A stretch of DNA of 63,510 nt, filler included, from Platydemus manokwari (taxonomy: Eukaryota): assembly GCA_037951405.1 (NCBI GenBank). It is 6 parts of 6 records of this genome, joined end to end, with 100 filler letters (N's around TTAATTAATTAA, not from the genome) between each part and the next. Parts side by side here need not be neighbours in the genome. Positions count along the whole stretch, not along the records: positions 12,107 to 21,879 come from JBBMOY011206432.1; 5 more parts are not named here. One strand, 5' to 3'. This document shows, piece after piece, positions 12,107 to 23,066 of this stretch. Positions within the stretch are counted from its first letter, which is position 1, and every line of letters starts with the position of its first letter. The notes under the pieces were generated by a model. That model did no database searches and was not told where the DNA came from. It saw only the letters and a list, made by a program, of their open reading frames with translations. The translations under genes were made by a program, and so were the position numbers.

Positions 12107-12864
12107 ACTATGCAAAATGTACTTTAAATAAATAAATATTTTTCAAAAAAAACCGAAATTTTAAGGTTATACACCTAATACATACTACCCAAATAACTTG
12201 TCAGAGAGCTGAAAATCAATAATTTTATTGAACTTCAATTAATATACACCTAAAAAGGTGCAGACATCTTAACGCATCAAAGACATATGAGAAAAGGGAA
12301 GAAAATCTACCAATTAAATATAGTTAAATTTTCTAAAGTTTCGAACAAATAGGGAAACCATATTCAACACGACACAAGTTACACAGATAACACAGTTAAC
12401 TTTTTACAGGAATTCAGTCTTTTATGCTCATTAATCTTTCGTGTATATATTTCATTGTCTTTTGTCAACTGAGGCTACTTGATAGTGATTTAAATTCTCA
12501 CGTTTTATTGTATTGCATTTTGCCAAATTATATTTTACTTTATCGATAATGTGATCCAATAAAAATATAAATATCTATTTCTTATTTAAATTACTTATTT
12601 CTCTGTTCTCCAAACAATAATTTATTCGAAACGGGAGGATGTCATACGAATAACGTGTAGAATTTAAATTCCCATTCAATGTTATAATCAATCAAAATTT
12701 GGCATAATAGATTCGATCCGATAATATTCAATAGTAAAACATATTTTTAAGCAACTTTAAAAATAACTTAATATTAATGAAGAAATAATAATTTCGGTAA
12801 AGATCAACATGACTACATTAATTTAACAGCTTTGGGGTGCTCCCAAAAGAATAATTAAATCTAC

Positions 12865-15800
12865 CTGGATAAACATGTTGTCTGCCTCTGATATTTCTGG
12901 GTCGTTGCTATATGATTTAGCATCTAAAAATTGCCTGCATGTTTGACCCTCGTGGATAGCATTACAAGGAATACAGTTTACCTTTTTACAGAGAGGACAC
13001 CTAAAAGACTTCACATCTTCATCGTAAGCAACCCATGCAATACAGTTAACTTCTTTACAATGAAACGATCGTTTTTCCTTTGCCTCGGCCATTCTCAGGC
13101 TCAATTCTTGATATCTCAAATATTCTGCGTCACTAAGCATCTACAGAATGTTGGCAATGGAAAAATGAGAACCCAGGAAAACCTACATGTCGAATTTCTC
13201 GGTCTTCAACAAGTCCCATGCAATTTTCTGTAGGACATTTTACTTGTGCATCTTCAGCATTGATTAAATAATTTCTGAAACACTCCCTAAAATTAGAATT
13301 TCTCAATATTTTGTAAATCTTTCTTGAATAAATTTTAATTGGTAGGAAACTTGCTTAAAGAATCTGTATGTCGAAAATATATTTCTGCTAAAACAAATTT
13401 CTATGCGATCCAAAAATTAGAATAAAAATTTAAGTTGCAATGTAAGGAAATTTATAACCCTTTCTTGTTGTTCACATCAGGTTATCAGTGACGATTGATG
13501 GTAAAGAATTTTCAATAATTCACCTTACGGCTTGGACTTTTGTAGATTGATGAATTAACGGTATACCCTCGTTACCAAAATAGAAATAGAGAATCATACT
13601 TAACCTATCGAACCCAATTTTCACTAATGATAATCACCATTACTAGTGTGGATGAACAACAATTTTGAATTGGTTAAAAATTTATTTTATCGTTTGAATA
13701 TACCATATAAGCATCTGAACTTACTTATGATAACAAATAAACAACACGATCAATAAATGCACTTATTGCTGAAAATCAAGATATAAAAATAAAAACAATT
13801 AAAATGGGTCATGTGATTCATATTGTCATCCAGGCGATATACTTAGACAATCACTGGAGATAGGACAAACACGTTTTAATAGAAGTGAATATTCAGATGT
13901 ATTATTTCATTTTTGCTTCAGACACACCCATACACATATTTATAATTATTAATGATACGTTGGCATTGATAATATTTGCAATAGAACTAACTTTGAAATA
14001 TTATAAATGAAAGAAATATTATCAAATAAATCATTTCAAAACTTTCAATCAATAATTTGATTTAATAGATTTTTATTATGATAGCTGACAGGTTATACCT
14101 TCTAATTAATGAAAATATTTATAACGTTAATGAGATTGGTACTTTTCATCTGGACTCCATAACTCATTAGTTTTTGACGACTACGCATCTACAGTACCAT
14201 AACAATATAGTGCCTCCTTGTGTTTTTTTCAATCAATTATTAAGTCATGTTTTGTTTAATCATATTTTATTACAATTCTACTGTTTATCATTATGCATTA
14301 TCCACCCTATAAGTAAATATAAATTTACTTATATGAAGAATGCTTTTTAAAATTTCTATCACTCTTCCAAACACAATAATCGAAGAAACCTAAATTAATT
14401 GTCTTATCTACTTATTACTTACTTACATACTTATTGTTACAGCATCATTCCAGACAAAAACCTGTCACTTGTTCGGAGACAAAATTTATACAAAGTCATA
14501 TAACTCAATACCAAATCAGTACTTAAGATACTATAATAGTAACTTCTTATTGGTGAGTTTCAACCGTTAAACAGTCATATTTTTTGAAATGTTTAATGAT
14601 GGTCTGAATAAAAAGAATTGCAAATTATAGAACGATTCATGAAATCAATAAAGTTCTGTGTAGGAAATACTGAATCAAAATCTATCTCATATTGTGATAA
14701 GTGATGGAAAATCGAAACATTATTAAATATCAAAACTAATAAATCATTCTAGGCGGATTTGAATTTTCTAATAATTTCATATTTTTCCACTTCTTAAAAA
14801 AAATTCATTGATTCTCACATTCTGCATTTTATTAGCTCCAAAGCATTTCGAAATCTATCCCCATATCCATCTCTTTACTGTATTTTGATCATAGCTCAGA
14901 AAAAATAGATTCGTTGACGGTGTTTTTGATACAAACCCAGAATTGAAGAATACTCGAAGTATCTTCGAATATCGATCAATTTATAACCTTGATTGGTACA
15001 TTTCATATAGATTTGAAATTCATACACGGCCATCATATTCTATCAAGAATAGGCTATGATGACATGGAGTCCATTTAAAACAAATCATGAATATGCTATA
15101 CGAGTATCGTTCATGAGATTGATAATTCCATCTCTTATTCAACATACATTCATAAATAATAATTAAATACACATTTCATTCAATACATTATTTCCCAGCT
15201 ATATTTACTGAAATCAGCACACAACTCTAAAATAAATCGAATAAATGTTGGTAGCAGAATGAGAATCCATCAAACCGTTCCAGCGTAATTTCCCTGCCGA
15301 ATAGTACCAATAGTGGGGAATGATCACAAACAGTATTTCAATGGCTAACAAATGTAACGGTTCCTCTATAGTTTTAGATAATAAAAGTATTGTTGAGGTT
15401 CTAAAGAATTGAAAGTTGCAATTTGTATGTCAGTACTCAAACGCACTACTCAATACGAACAGGAATAACTCAAACTCAAGAAAAACTTCATAAATCAATA
15501 TATAACAGCAACATATAACTTGGCTTCAAACTGGCAGTTGGACATCTTCACATCAGTACTTATACTTGAAATTTGTGTATTATTTGTGCATCACGTCCTG
15601 ATTTGATCTTTCATTTCTCAAGTTCCAAATGGATTTATTGATTTTGAATACTCGGGATTGGTAAATCCCTATATACGTATTACTGTGTGGCAATGTCCAT
15701 ATTTCAAATTAAAATTCTCCAAGTAAGTCAGCTGTGATTGATTGATTTTCATGTCTGTATGGTTGTGTAAGAATGCAAATAAGAGTTCCAAGAGCCAAAA

Positions 15801-16425
15801 TCACATTCTTTTATGAGATTTCGTCTCTGCTTAACAGTATCTTTGAAAATTAGATCGATATAATCTGTGATTTTATTAATCCTTATAGCGAAGTACTCTT
15901 AGGAGAAGTATTTTAGGTCAAATAAAGACTCACTTGCATATTGTATGAAGACAACTATGCAATATTATAGCTTCACCAGCCTCACAGTCCATCATGCATA
16001 CAGGACATTCTGTGACTTCACTGGTATTTGCAATCGCCATCTTAGATAAGAGCATCAAATTTTTGTAAGTTCTGGTCTTTTCCTCTTCCATTTTTCTCAT
16101 CATTTCATTTTCCAACTAATTTTTAAAGGACTGAAATCAATCTAAATAAACATTGAAAAAGGCGAACCTCAAGAGCTCGTAATTCTGATTCTTTTTTTTC
16201 GGTAAAAATTACAATTTCCTCATCAGTCGGATTCCAATAGCTTGGCACAATATATTGCTCTGGTTGATTGTTACTGCACACCTCGCAAAACTTATTGAAT
16301 GGTAAATTGATAAATGTGCAAGAATCGCAAGCCCATCCTATTTTCGGTAGCTTGAAATCGCTATCGGTTTTCATCTTGTATTCAATCCATTTTTGAAATT
16401 TTTTGTAATGTGATTCATCGAGACC
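12865..16425 (-). CDS. RBCK1: RBCK1/HOIL-1-like RBR E3 ubiquitin ligase (NZF-RING1-IBR visible; RING2 beyond the contig end; 5' exons probably about 17840-18480)
   Basis: Exons 16425-16168, 16115-15934, 13286-13187 and 13140-12865 splice in frame with GT-AG introns of 52, 2647 and 46 nt. They encode the NZF GWACDSCTFINLPFNKFCEVC followed by the HOIL-1-like tail PEQYIVPSYWNPTDEE, RING1 ECPVCMMDCEAGEAIILHSCLHTICKEC...VKCP and IBR SFHCKEVNCIAW...FRCPLCKKVNCIPCNAIHEGQTC. Confidence 0.9.
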
Positions 16426-17193: not shown

Positions 17194-18947
17194 GCTTAAA
17201 CAATACTTTTGTATGGATAAAAAAATAATTAAATTTTTTTTTTGAAAGAATGTAAATTTATTCACAAAAAGAAAAATGAAATACAATGATAATTATGTTC
17301 ATAAGAAGTTAAGAGTTATTGAAAAAATAATTTTGTGTATGAAATCATATTCTCGAGATCATATACTTGAAAATATAATAGTTAATGATGATCAATATGA
17401 TATATTTTTTAAAAAATGATTAAGTGTCTGTACCAAATTTAAAAAATTACAAAATAATTTAGAAGAAAGTAATATATGGCTATAATTAAAATACATTATA
17501 TCGAAAAATAAAATACTTTATTAAAGAGAATACGGATAGCAGATGATATATTCAAGTGAAAAAATTAAGAGGAAATTTAGTAAAATTATTCATTAAGAGT
17601 TAAATAATAGCCAAACGAAGTACTTTACTTTTCAAGAAAGCTAGAAATCGGAGGTAGGCGTAATTTGTTATTAGCTTTGTAAAATTTTTACGGTTGGTGT
17701 AGCATTGGTGTAATTATCGTAACATGATTAAATAAACCTTATAATGTATCATGGAAATATATGAGAGTATTCATGTATAAAAGTAGACTTACGGTGTTTC
17801 GTATCAACAATGAAAAGAGGTTCCGAATTGGTATCTCACTTTCATATACATAAGTAATTCCTGATTTGTGACCATATTGTTGGAGTCATTATTTTTCTTT
17901 TAAATATAATGTGAGTCCGATACTACCGATTGAAATGTAATGTCAATACATTAACACAAAGAATGTGGCAATAAAATTTATTTGAATCCACAACAAATCT
18001 ACAAATATCTAACAAATGAAAATTTCAAATATCTTTATAATAAATGTTTCCCTTTTATTCAATAATTATATGTTATTTCACAAACACAATTAATTTCACA
18101 TTTACACAAAGGTTCAAATTTACCCAACCCCACAGTTTTAAAAACGAAAGTCAACAAAAGAAGATTAATCTTTGGCTGATCTGATAGTCTGTTCTTTTCT
18201 GTTTTATGCTTTGATAGAAAGTTGAAGTTTAATAAGAAAGTGTTAATTTGATAAATTTCCAAAGACTGTCAGTGAGTGTGATCCAGCGAGAAGATTTATG
18301 GAGCTTCTCTGATTTTGGAATTTTGTCAATATCAACTTCTTATCGTATGTTCACATGTACAAATATATTTTAAGAGTTTGAAATTAAGTTACATTTAATT
18401 ATTACAGTAAAATTGTTGCTTCACTAAACAGAAACTTCAGAAAAAATTGGGCACTGATTTATAATTTTCACATTACCACTTATTTAAAAAATTAGTAAGT
18501 AAGTTGAAAATAAATTCAATATAGTTTAATTTTATCAGTTTTGCTAAGAATTTTTAAATAATTATCATTTTTTATCCCAAAAGAAAGTTCAAAATATTGT
18601 GTAAACTTGAAATGAGTCTATATCTTGATTATATATGAACAAAATGCATTTTAAATGTAAAAATTACTTTGGTAATATAATTCATATTCTATAAGGCAAT
18701 ACTAAGCTTGAAAAGCCTATCATAATGTCTTAAATGACAATTTTTAACATTTTTACTTTTAGATAATTAGATTTGTTTCTATTCAAACTATTATTGAATT
18801 TTTAGTTTGTTTTGTTTATTTATTTAAATTGTCCTAACATATTTTAAAATATTTTAAAATTCTAACGTGCTTTAAAGATACATTTTTTAAATAAATAAAT
18901 TATTGAATTTATAATTAAAATATTTTTATTAAACTATTATATAATAG

Positions 18948-21063
18948 GATAGTCTTGAAATATATCGAAATGAAGATAATTCTATTTTAACAAACCATCA
19001 GCCTAGTGGTGATAATGTTCTTGATTATTATACAATTGTATTGCATCAATCCATTAATTTCACAAAGTGTTTCGTTGTTTCAAATTTAAACGGTGAATTA
19101 ATAACTTACCACGAAGAAGAAAATAATTTGGTAATAATTGTTTCTCAATTAAAAATTTTTTTTTTCAATTAGATTATTAAAAAAGATGGATATAAAGAAT
19201 TGGTACCAGAAGAATTATTTAACAAAGCCAATAAGTGTATTAAATGTGCAGTTGATAATTTTAAGTCGTTGGACTACGACGTTACGGTTGGATTATTTAC
19301 TGTTGGTTTATAATTGTTATTGGAATAAATAGAAAATTATTTGTATGAGCATTTGTACTCATCGCAATATTGTCGTTGTTTGGAGCAAGAAATCTGGTAA
19401 ATCGTTATACAATGCACTGACAGAAGAAGATATCAGATGTGATGAAGCTTGTCAAAGATTGATTCAAAAATCCTGGCGAAAATCAAGAACAAATTTCCAA
19501 GTAAATTATTAAAAAAATATCATTAATGATGGCTGTCAGCATTTATGTGGTCTCCCGATCAGTGCTAAGTGGGCTGGAGTGAAGCTGAAATGGCTCATTG
19601 AGAATATTAGCTCAGTGCAAGAAGTGTACAAAGATGGTGATCTCAGATTCGGAACCCTTGATACATGGTTGCTGTGGCAACTGACCGGTGGCCAATGTTA
19701 CGCCACTGATGTCACGAATGCCAGCTACACAATGCTCATGAATCTGCATCGATATTCGTGGGATTCATCCATCTGTAAATTTATCGAGATCGATTTGTCA
19801 ATGCTGCCAGAAATCAAGAGCTGCACAGAACTGTTTGGCAAAATTGCTCACGATTCTGATAGCGGTGTGGCAGGATTGGCTATTACAGGGTGTGTGTGCG
19901 ACATAAAGGCCAATATTATTGGTCATCAAGGAATGCAGCCGGGTTCTGTGAGCCTTCATGTCGACTCTGAGCTCGGTGCAAGTCATGTTACGATATCAGT
20001 TGGTGAGGAGGTGCTCTTCTATCGGTACGTGTTGAAAGGGGTCGGTTTCATGTTAAGCACGGCCTCATATCAATTCGGTAGCAAGGCAAATGTTAATTAT
20101 TCGTTGGAGGTGAGTTCAGTTTGTATTGGCTTGCTTGTGTGTCATTGGGAGACAATTTGCTCCAATCGAATCGCTTTGTGCTCGCTAAATGGGGGTGGGG
20201 GTCCTTTTTGGGATAAAATATCATCATTTTGGGATTCCGTATTTAAATAATGTGTGTATTGTTGCTAGGCAACACTCTACAATAGTCAGAACTTATTGCC
20301 ATGGTTTCGTGACTGTTTGCGCGTCGTGTCGAGTACAGATGATATTGATGCGGTCGCTAACTCGGTATCAGATTCCAACGGTTGCTATTTCATCCCAACT
20401 ACTGGAGCAACACACAGCCCCCTCGAACGCAACCAGTATCGACATGTCAATCTGTGGGGCATCAATCTCACCAATTCACGGCCAGGCCATATCGTGCGGT
20501 CTGCTCTCGAAGCTGTTGCTGCTGAGGTGGCCAATTTGCTCGCTTCCGTCACCAGTGTCGTCGGTAGACCGTACGAGATTCTCAATGTTGGCGGACGAGG
20601 CCTGGAGCGTAGCGATGCCTTTTGCCAGATCCTTGCCGACTACACTGGACTCAAAGTCGAGCGGCTAGCTATGTCGGAAGCCGTTATTATTGGAGGAGCT
20701 TTACTCGCCGTTGTCGGGGCTAATTTAGACCCTTCTGGTCTCCAGGGACCGCTGAAAGAGGGATTCTCATGTCTGATGGTTCCTGGCGAGCGGAGAAAAC
20801 GATGTCGCCAATGGATTAGCTTGGCCAATGAGCAAGAATTGCTGGATCATCGATTCTGGATCGGTAGCGATGATGAAGGCGTCTTGAATGTCGATCACAG
20901 AGGTGCGGTACTGCCTGTGAGAAACAAGAAATATTTATCCTCTCAGCGCAATTGGGTGTGGAAGATTCTGTCGGTGCTAATGATTGGCACCCCTTTTACG
21001 CTGATTGGGTTCGGTGCTGCACTCCTCATTAGCAGTAGCCACTCTAGATTTAATAAATTGTAG
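18948..21063 (+). CDS. Glycerol kinase-like (FGGY family) protein, probably catalytically dead, with C-terminal transmembrane helix; start codon not located
   Basis: Exons 18948-19130, 19173-19286, 19333-19500, 19540-20109 and 20269-21063 (GT-AG introns of 42, 46, 39, 159 nt) give 609 codons plus stop. GK-fold motifs: GKSLYNA, GLPIS..AGVKLKWLIEN, FGTLDTWLLWQLTGG, TDVTNASYTMLMNL, MLPEIKS, GCYFIP, HIVRSALEAVA, QILAD. Confidence 0.88.
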
Positions 21064-23066
21064 TTTTGTTCTCTCTTGTGTGATGTGACTGTGATCGATT
21101 GTGACTGATTTGTAATTGATTGTGATTGGCTGATATATTTGAGTGCCATTTATCCAATATTTATTGCTATACTAATCATTATTATTGATCTCAATCTCAC
21201 GCACACACAATTTCCTTTATCTTGTTCAATGGAAAATCATTCCGATATCGTGACTCATCCAATATTTTATTGGTTGTTCTTTTATACATGTTTTTCATCC
21301 ATTTTTATCCAATAGATTTGCTGTTATATATTTATGAGGGATCGTCAAAATGGTAACTCAGTAATTACCAAGAATTAAATTTTCGATTTTTATTAAGTGG
21401 AGATTTGACTATTTGTATGAAAATTTTGTTTCAATTATATTGGTGATATAAATATTATTGTACTCATTATTTCATTAAACCTTTAACCATGACATTTTGC
21501 AACTCAATGATATGATTTATAATGAACCTTGGAATTGGTCAAGTGGGTTACTTCAAATTATTATCATTAATATTTATGTCTACCAGACCTGACTTATAAA
21601 CAACCTTTATAATTCAATTAATTTAATTGTTTTGCTAATGAATGAATTCCGTCTGAATTGTCGTAATCACTTTTCTATTATTTTTAACATTCATATTTCT
21701 ATTGTGATTTGAAGTTCATTCATTTTAAATGTAAACTTACCTTTACAATATCGTCCAGATTTTCTTGAGGCAATTTTAAATAAATGATTTATGAAACAAC
21801 ATTCAAATTTCAACTAATGATTTAATTGAAAGAGAATTTAATTGAATTGTTAAATTTTTAAAAATGGATTACTATTTGANNNNNNNNNNNNNNNNNNNNN
21901 NNNNNNNNNNNNNNNNNNNNNNNTTAATTAATTAANNNNNNNNNNNNNNNNNNNNNNNNNNNNNNNNNNNNNNNNNNNNTGAATGCTTCTTCTGTCATCT
22001 TTGTTTTGTGGGGAACTGCGTTTTGTATTGTAAAAAAAAATTCGATGATTATATTATATCTGTTATTTTCAATTTTGTATTTTATTTTTATTATTATAGT
22101 CTTCATTATTGTTATTATTATTATAGTTATTTAAATCAAATATTAAACATTGATAATCGGTCACGATTATTCCGATTATCGATTCAGTAAAACAATAGAC
22201 AATTAATGATTTCATAAACGCATTCAAAAATAAATTTTCCTTACAGCTAAATTGCAAGAAACTACCACGAGAATTTTAATTATTCAGAACATAAACAATA
22301 TTGATAATGAGAGGGAGAGATAGTGCAAAAATTGAAAGATTGGAGAAACCAATAAACGTTGAGCGTGGAAATATCTCCACAAATATATATCATAGAAAAA
22401 AATAAGTTTTTCGCAACGAAATAATTTATTCATAAAAAAGGAAAATCTTATCAATCTGGAGCGCAACAAATAAATGCTTGAATTATGTAGATGCTATCGT
22501 CTGCCATCTACAACGATCGCTGTGTAATTATTATGACGGTTTCGGTCAGCAGCTCAGACATCCTCACACGCCCGATGAATGGAATATGTCAACATTTCTG
22601 TGGATGATAATCGTTCATAATTGCAGACTTCACAGTTAATATTATCGTTGACAACGACAGTAACAACAACAAAACGTCACGTAATAAAATTTCCCTTCTG
22701 TAATGGAATCAAAACACAATTCACACATGCAGATATTTTTGTGGGAAAAAAAATTACTAATTCAATCCAGAAAAAAGGCGAGAAATCGAAACTGTATCGG
22801 TATTTGAATCATAATTTTTTTTTCCATTTTAAAACCCACAATGGAGAAAAGTCTAGTCGATATGCTTGAGGGATTTTGTGAAAAACATGAATAGCATATC
22901 GTCATGTAAAATCTGTAGAGCTATGATATATATCAATTTCGGTTTTTTTATTAGTATTAAATATATGTTTGAGGATTTATAATTATAGAAATTATTGTGA
23001 AGAATGATATTGGAATTAAATTTAAGTTGATTATGGTGCATTTGTCGATGACATCCAAATATCTAG

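Follow-up and report, generated by a model that had tools for sequence, protein, structure and literature searches.

In glycerol kinase (GK), D10 of the phosphate-1 loop binds Mg, T13 and T14 bind the phosphates, and D245 is the catalytic base. A phosphate-1 D.G.T loop and a phosphate-2 GTG loop are needed for ATP-Mg binding throughout the ASKHA superfamily. To our knowledge, mammalian sperm provides the only known case of non-catalytic "moonlighting" of GK at mitochondria. GK2 and Gykl1 are recent mammalian retrogene copies, highly similar to GK, in which the catalytic motifs are essentially intact. These paralogues show no detectable kinase activity and are adaptors on the outer mitochondrial membrane (PMC5566117); the adaptor role involves interaction with PLD6 and formation of the mitochondrial sheath (PMC5566117, PMC6473107, PMC8609336). 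The last 29 residues of mouse Gykl1 are necessary for targeting to the outer mitochondrial membrane (PMC5566117), and the GK2 tail was selected as a putative tail anchor for testing (PMC6849228). GK-like arrays sit on VDAC lattices, and GKs form conserved dimers (PMC8609336). No description of a motif-ablated FGGY/GK pseudoenzyme was found in the searchable full-text literature.

A candidate for such a protein is encoded in a 63,510-nucleotide stretch of Platydemus manokwari DNA (assembly GCA_037951405.1), called the window below, which joins parts of six records with filler between them; the gene lies in the part taken from JBBMOY011206432.1. It occupies 18948-21063 on the + strand, in five exons bounded by GT..AG, with 614 codons followed by TAG (Table 1). 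On balance it is best read as a lineage-restricted GK paralogue that encodes a catalytically dead, tail-anchored scaffold with the GK fold. Homology was searched with single exons, and the exons were joined for alignments, dN/dS and trees; the orthologous protein P0003 served as a full-length proxy. A previous sequence-only reading of this DNA had proposed an intact, spliced GK paralogue of 609 codons, and had named an FGGY phylogeny, dN/dS and an AlphaFold comparison as ways to check it. A spliced GK homologue is indeed present at this place, as judged by the five exons, the FGGY_N and FGGY_C matches and colinearity with GK. "Intact" applies to the frame, which is open downstream of the 5' end; the count is 614 codons, and exon 1 (E1) lacks an in-frame ATG.

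Table 1. Features of the GK paralogue. Positions are those of the window; motifs are named after canonical GK, with residues in E. coli GlpK numbering. L001 (with its protein P0001) and P0003 are orthologues and form a clade with the window gene.
Feature	Position	Strand	Description
Candidate first mini-exon (speculative)	17761-17766	+	ATGAGA, then GTATTC; would yield M-R-DSLEIY, matching M53-R54-DTLEIY of P0003
Exon 1 (E1)	18948-19130	+	61 codons; bears the conserved N-terminal peptide DSLEIYRNEDNS and a degenerate phosphate-1 loop
N-terminal peptide	18948-18983	+	E1 residues 1-12
Phosphate-1 loop, DQGTTS	19044-19061	+	HQSINF in the window and L001; HQSLYF in P0003
Exon 2 (E2)	19173-19301	+	43 codons
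GW.EHDP (E2)			GYKELVP in the window and the clade
Exon 3 (E3)	19333-19500	+	56 codons; Pfam FGGY_N 6e-4
NQRET	19357-19371	+	THRNI in the window; THRNI / THSNL / TSRNA across the clade
W103 (E3)			E in the window and the clade
Exon 4 (E4)	19540-20109	+	190 codons; Pfam FGGY_N 1.8e-21; PDB top match 7nie_A, a GK, 3e-32
Y135-F (E4)			K-W in the window; K/R-W in the clade
ASRT (E4)			ASYT in the window and the clade
GDQQ	19897-19908	+	CDIK in the window and the clade; D245 kept, Q246 lost
Phosphate-2 loop, AKNTYGTGCF	19951-19986	+	KNTYGTGCF region reads SLHVDSELGASH in the window, replaced by S-L-H-V-D-S-E-L-G-A-S-H; lost in the clade, with a 6-residue insertion
Exon 5 (E5)	20269-21063	+	264 codons and TAG (21061-63); FGGY_C core, variable linker, predicted TM helix, basic tail; Pfam FGGY_C 1.2e-18; PDB GK 6e-14; 72% identity to P0001/L001
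Adenosine motif, VDGG	20587-20601	+	VGGRG; VSGRG in P0003; D lost, R inserted, glycines remain
ETTALGAA helix			EAVI(I/L)GGA in the clade
Predicted C-terminal TM helix	20965-21030	+	ILSVLMIGTPFTLIGFGAALLI, then a 10-residue tail, SSSHSRFNKL, net +2

The protein carries Pfam FGGY_N (PF00370) followed by FGGY_C (PF02782), matched by E4 at 77 bits (cutoff 28.8) and by E5 at 68 bits (cutoff 27). E1 and E2, searched singly against Pfam and PDB, gave no meaningful match; both are colinear with GK in the full-length alignment and correspond to the first N-domain strands in an AF2 model of P0003. That model was computed from an alignment of 63 rows, including the window and L001 exons, and has a mean pLDDT of 81.8. 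Values are mostly >90 over residues 80-590, the equivalent of E1-E2 included; residues 1-76 and 593-624, the latter a disordered linker, are of low confidence (most pLDDT <50), and residues 624-655 form one long helix. In Foldseek, the model superposes on T. brucei GK (8y1t) with a TM score of 0.91 (target length) and an rmsd of 2.3 A, and all the top matches listed are GKs. Judged on this orthologue, which is 77% identical, the two-domain FGGY/ASKHA fold is retained. Residues 1-130 of E4 are the best preserved part, with 48% identity to the canonical consensus as against 22% in residues 131-190; outside E4 1-130 the identity is 20-30%.

Two orthologues with 72-79% identity were recovered: a 2.7-kb Logan contig (L001) and a UniParc protein of 659 aa (P0003). 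A word search with E5 returned one protein, P0001, which is 72% identical and is encoded on L001, and an exhaustive HMMER search with E4 returned an ORF of L001 (P0002) and P0003. HMMER scores with E4 fall from about 340 to 128 bits past these sequences, where the canonical GKs begin. Neither word searches with E5, E4 and full-length P0003 nor two metagenome scans gave members beyond L001/P0001/P0002 and P0003, and no contig encoding P0003 is on record. The clade as known consists of three sequences.

At the DNA level, the five exons of the window and L001 align in frame, with mainly third-position differences and not a single frame disruption in either genome. The four introns are at identical positions and keep GT..AG throughout, and their sequences have diverged, with indels. 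Per-exon dN is 0.13-0.18, E1 included, with dS at 1.7-2.2 or saturated. E1 is 75% identical at the amino-acid level (dN 0.149, dS 2.15), and its stretch containing HQSINF is nearly invariant between the two genomes. Overall omega (LWL85) is ~0.09, with dS saturated. By this pattern of substitution, the gene is under strong purifying selection and is not a pseudogene.

The three sequences form a clade of their own in trees, with 100% support (SH-aLRT). The stem of the clade measures 3-6 substitutions per site and the branches within it only 0.03-0.2, a contrast that suggests a burst of change on the stem followed by conservation. In a tree with named taxa, the stem joins beside mollusc GKs within the animal GKs (support 85), and it is not drawn to the long bacterial, algal and nematode branches, where long-branch attraction would pull. 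The best-scoring named proteins are mollusc and crustacean GKs, at 32-36% identity. The gene is an animal GK paralogue, probably protostome or spiralian. Orthology to GK2/Gykl1 was considered and ruled out, the clade being separate and placed near the mollusc GKs, not with the vertebrate-like sequence.

For the active site, two alignments of the three clade members were made, one against 20 canonical GKs and a later one against 52; the E. coli numbering is consistent with the PDB alignment ranges (E4 residues 4-135 against chain residues 129-259). All three members retain only 71 of the 149 columns that show at least 90% conservation among the 52 canonical GKs. The lost columns include D10, G12, T13, E84, W103, Y135, R188, Q246, the K-NTYGTG-F block and the D of VDGG, and the losses cluster in nucleotide-binding and glycerol-binding elements. 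Only D245 of the glycerol contacts R83, E84, W103, Y135, D245 and F270 is kept in all three, and R83 is kept in two of the three; E84 is N, W103 is E, Y135 is K or R, and the F270 column holds H. Because both phosphate loops are lost, the protein is predicted, with good confidence, to have no glycerol kinase activity. The changed columns of the former active site are 62% identical within the clade, compared with 63% for ordinary columns. The old pocket thus appears to evolve like the rest of the protein, with no sign of a specially constrained new ligand site.

These results agree in large part with the sequence-only reading. Every substitution that it listed (D10H, E84N, W103 to E, Y135 to K, CDI, the lost KNTYGTGCF, VGGRG) was reproduced in the alignments with 20 and 52 GKs. 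Its pseudoenzyme under selection is upheld by ablated motifs common to two orthologues, by conserved intron positions, by an omega far from 1, and by an orthologue model that superposes on solved GKs. The phylogeny likewise places the gene in a separate, long-stemmed clade near mollusc GKs, apart from the mammalian testis paralogues.

The coding sequence as modelled is 5'-incomplete. In both the window and L001, a TAG (18945-47) abuts E1 and supplies the acceptor AG (18946-47), and no strong phase-0 first exon of the form ATG...GT(A/G)A was found upstream of E1. P0003 reads M53-R54-DTLEIY in its N-terminal part; its residues 1-52 match nothing upstream of E1 within the window, so they lack conservation and could stem from a faulty prediction. 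A speculative source of the start codon is the ATGAGA mini-exon of Table 1; the chance of such a match to the start of the P0003 peptide in the 2.1-kb upstream space is estimated at ~0.03-0.05. Alternatively, the AUG might be donated by a spliced leader that ends with it, as happens in flatworms. As regards a possible N-terminal signal peptide, the first 26 residues from E1 are polar and acidic, and of low confidence in the model. The peptide at their beginning, D(S/T)LEIY(R/K)N(E/D)(D/E)NS, is kept in all three species and is not present in canonical GKs; it sits in a low-confidence, likely disordered region of the model and may be a short linear motif.

The introns of the window gene are 42, 31, 39 and 159 nt long. 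Intron 2 is very short in both genomes, 31 nt in the window (19302-19332) and 24 nt in L001 (419-442), with GT..AG and an in-frame stop in each, and its position is also skipped in the P0003 protein model. An alternative genetic code that reads through the TAG was ruled out, conservation stopping at the TAG in both species (window and L001). A 2.9-kb contig of run X1, a DNA run and the only public one with the locus, equals the window base for base and shows no joints; X1 may be the sample behind the window assembly, and hence would add no independent support.

The surroundings of the gene have features of their own. A GC island of 46-49% extends over 19.6-21.1 kb of a piece that is otherwise AT-rich (20-33% GC), and the gene has flanks of 20-30% GC. 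Both GC and GC3 climb steeply from 5' to 3' along the gene in both species: in the window, GC3 rises from 0.18 (E1) to 0.51 (E5), and in L001 (47-2235) from 0.41 to 0.84. Biased gene conversion is one possible source of the E4-E5 island. Just past the stop, in the 3' UTR region, an imperfect short tandem repeat (TGTGATTGAT-like, period 10/21) lies at 21079-21128. The upstream neighbour, at 12823-16374 on the - strand, resembles an RBR-type E3 ubiquitin ligase, with an IBR domain at 12826-13140 (Pfam 4.5e-5), a RING-like ORF (CPVCMMDC...C.H..C) at 15930-16115 and a RanBP2-type zinc-finger-like ORF (W.CDSCTF.N....FCEVC) at 16123-16374. The gene adjoining the GK paralogue has a ~2.5 kb gap between exons, so that intron sizes in this genome look bimodal.

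The sequence-only reading had pointed to a hydrophobic helix at about 20965-21030 and a basic tail, and both are there. The helix is the highest Kyte-Doolittle peak of the window protein, with a 19-mer value of 2.09 (2.0-2.2 in all three proteins). The peak spans residues 586-604 of 614, leaving 10 residues after it, and the other peaks are buried strands and helices of the FGGY_C core. The 19-mer consensus is V(L/I)MIGTPFTLIGF..ALL(I/V), in which IGTPFTLIGF is invariant in all three species; in P0003 the helix is modelled as residues 624-655. In the three proteins a basic stretch, RNKK...RNW.WK, precedes the helix, and 8-10 residues with a net charge of +2 to +3 follow it. A single predicted TM segment close to the C-terminus is the tail-anchored layout, and the protein is very likely to be anchored in a membrane through it.

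Of the canonical animal GKs retrieved, 110 are 500 aa or longer, and 53 of these have a comparable hydrophobic helix at the C-terminus; they come from bivalves, gastropods, crustaceans, insects and hemichordates and include a vertebrate-like sequence. Since such a tail is widespread in canonical animal GKs, and GK2/Gykl1 also use theirs, the distribution indicates that the anchor is inherited from a GK ancestor and is not an independent invention. The description of the protein as independently evolved thus holds for the loss of catalysis, which occurred in a clade separate from the mammalian testis paralogues, and not for the tail. A tail hydrophobicity of ~2.1 with a charge of +2 to +3 does not discriminate reliably between mitochondrial, peroxisomal and ER targeting. 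By homology, the mitochondrial outer membrane is the most likely target, with about an even chance.

The paralogue shares both Pfam domains and their order with canonical animal GK (EC 2.7.1.30), is colinear with it over the whole length and has its fold, as judged by the orthologue model (TM 0.91). Its hydrophobic C-terminal tail is of the kind seen in many GKs from molluscs, crustaceans, insects and hemichordates and in vertebrate-like ones. It differs by an identity of only 27-36% and by the replacement in the clade of the phosphate loops, the VDGG aspartate and most glycerol contacts. Further differences are clade insertions, at phosphate-2 and ahead of the LLTT strand, a longer linker before the tail, and the conserved N-terminal peptide, D[ST]LEIY[RK]NEDNS. 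GK2/Gykl1 provide the closest functional analogy to the paralogue; they are not orthologous to it, and their motifs are essentially intact whereas those of the clade are thoroughly replaced. With ASKHA/sugar-kinase-fold pseudoenzymes, the clade shares an ATPase-fold scaffold kept under selection after the nucleotide loops were lost.

The favoured scaffold reading leads to the following model. In this descendant of an animal GK, both phosphate loops, the greater part of the adenosine motif and most of the residues that contact glycerol have been replaced, and neither productive ATP-Mg binding nor phosphorylation of glycerol is expected of the protein. Its moderately hydrophobic tail, flanked by basic residues, would be inserted post-translationally into the mitochondrial outer membrane, as in GK/GK2. 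There the protein would act as a non-catalytic adaptor or scaffold, using the conserved GK surface. By likeness to GK2/Gykl1 and to the GK-like arrays on VDAC, a scaffold or adaptor role is the most likely one. Residual or altered ligand binding is possible, given that D245 and the glycine-rich GGRG remain and that two of the three species also keep R83. The unspecial conservation of the pocket columns is compatible with a scaffold and is not positive evidence for one.

The protein could instead be a regulatory partner that heterodimerises with active GK, as a tether or modulator, or a membrane sensor with a remodelled cleft for a ligand. The best-conserved stretch, E4 1-130, belongs to the non-catalytic portion of the fold, D245 and the glycine-rich remnant of the adenosine motif persist, and conserved GK dimers are known (PMC8609336), all of which would suit such a role. 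The sensor, which the sequence-only reading had offered beside a scaffold, fares poorly: conservation of the changed pocket columns does not exceed that of ordinary ones, and this background level argues against a new specific ligand site. Taken together, the regulator or sensor is rather unlikely. More doubtful still is an enzyme in disguise, an FGGY-fold kinase or transferase with another substrate and an unconventional nucleotide site. It would explain the full fold, the strong selection and the D245 found in all three, but both phosphate loops are replaced by bulky or hydrophobic residues, phosphate-2 carries its 6-residue insertion, and D245 is the sole glycerol contact, out of six, that all three keep.

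A decaying pseudogene, or an annotation artefact with fortuitously open frames, would account for an E1 without ATG, for E1 and E2 being invisible to Pfam when searched singly, for an intron 2 of only 31/24 nt, and for a sole public run that is DNA. It is nonetheless very improbable, with 614 codons open over five exons in two genomes and a full-length protein model in a third species. Eight splice-site pairs are all GT..AG at identical positions, in introns that have diverged, and the low omega at saturated dS extends to E1. The assembly itself is matched base for base by the X1 contig, although perhaps from the same sample.

A wider form of the scaffold reading can be put forward only tentatively. 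An invertebrate lineage, probably spiralian, may have converted its tail-anchored GK to a motif-ablated protein with an obligate structural role in the mitochondrial outer membrane, independently of GK2/Gykl1 and with the sequence change taken much further. The GK-like proteins of mammalian sperm still resemble enzymes, so that their structural and enzymatic roles are hard to separate. Here the fold and tail appear to be held under strong selection despite the loss of the sites, which suggests a non-enzymatic function of the GK fold on which selection can act; a paralogue that has discarded its ATP and glycerol sites and kept fold and tail would be natural evidence for such a function. It would also be a clean tool to find the partners of that function, and would add an FGGY-family example to the catalogue of pseudoenzymes. 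If this wider form is true, the GK fold would have been recruited repeatedly as a scaffold at the surface of mitochondria, such as on VDAC lattices, and the clade would represent a natural separation-of-function allele of GK.
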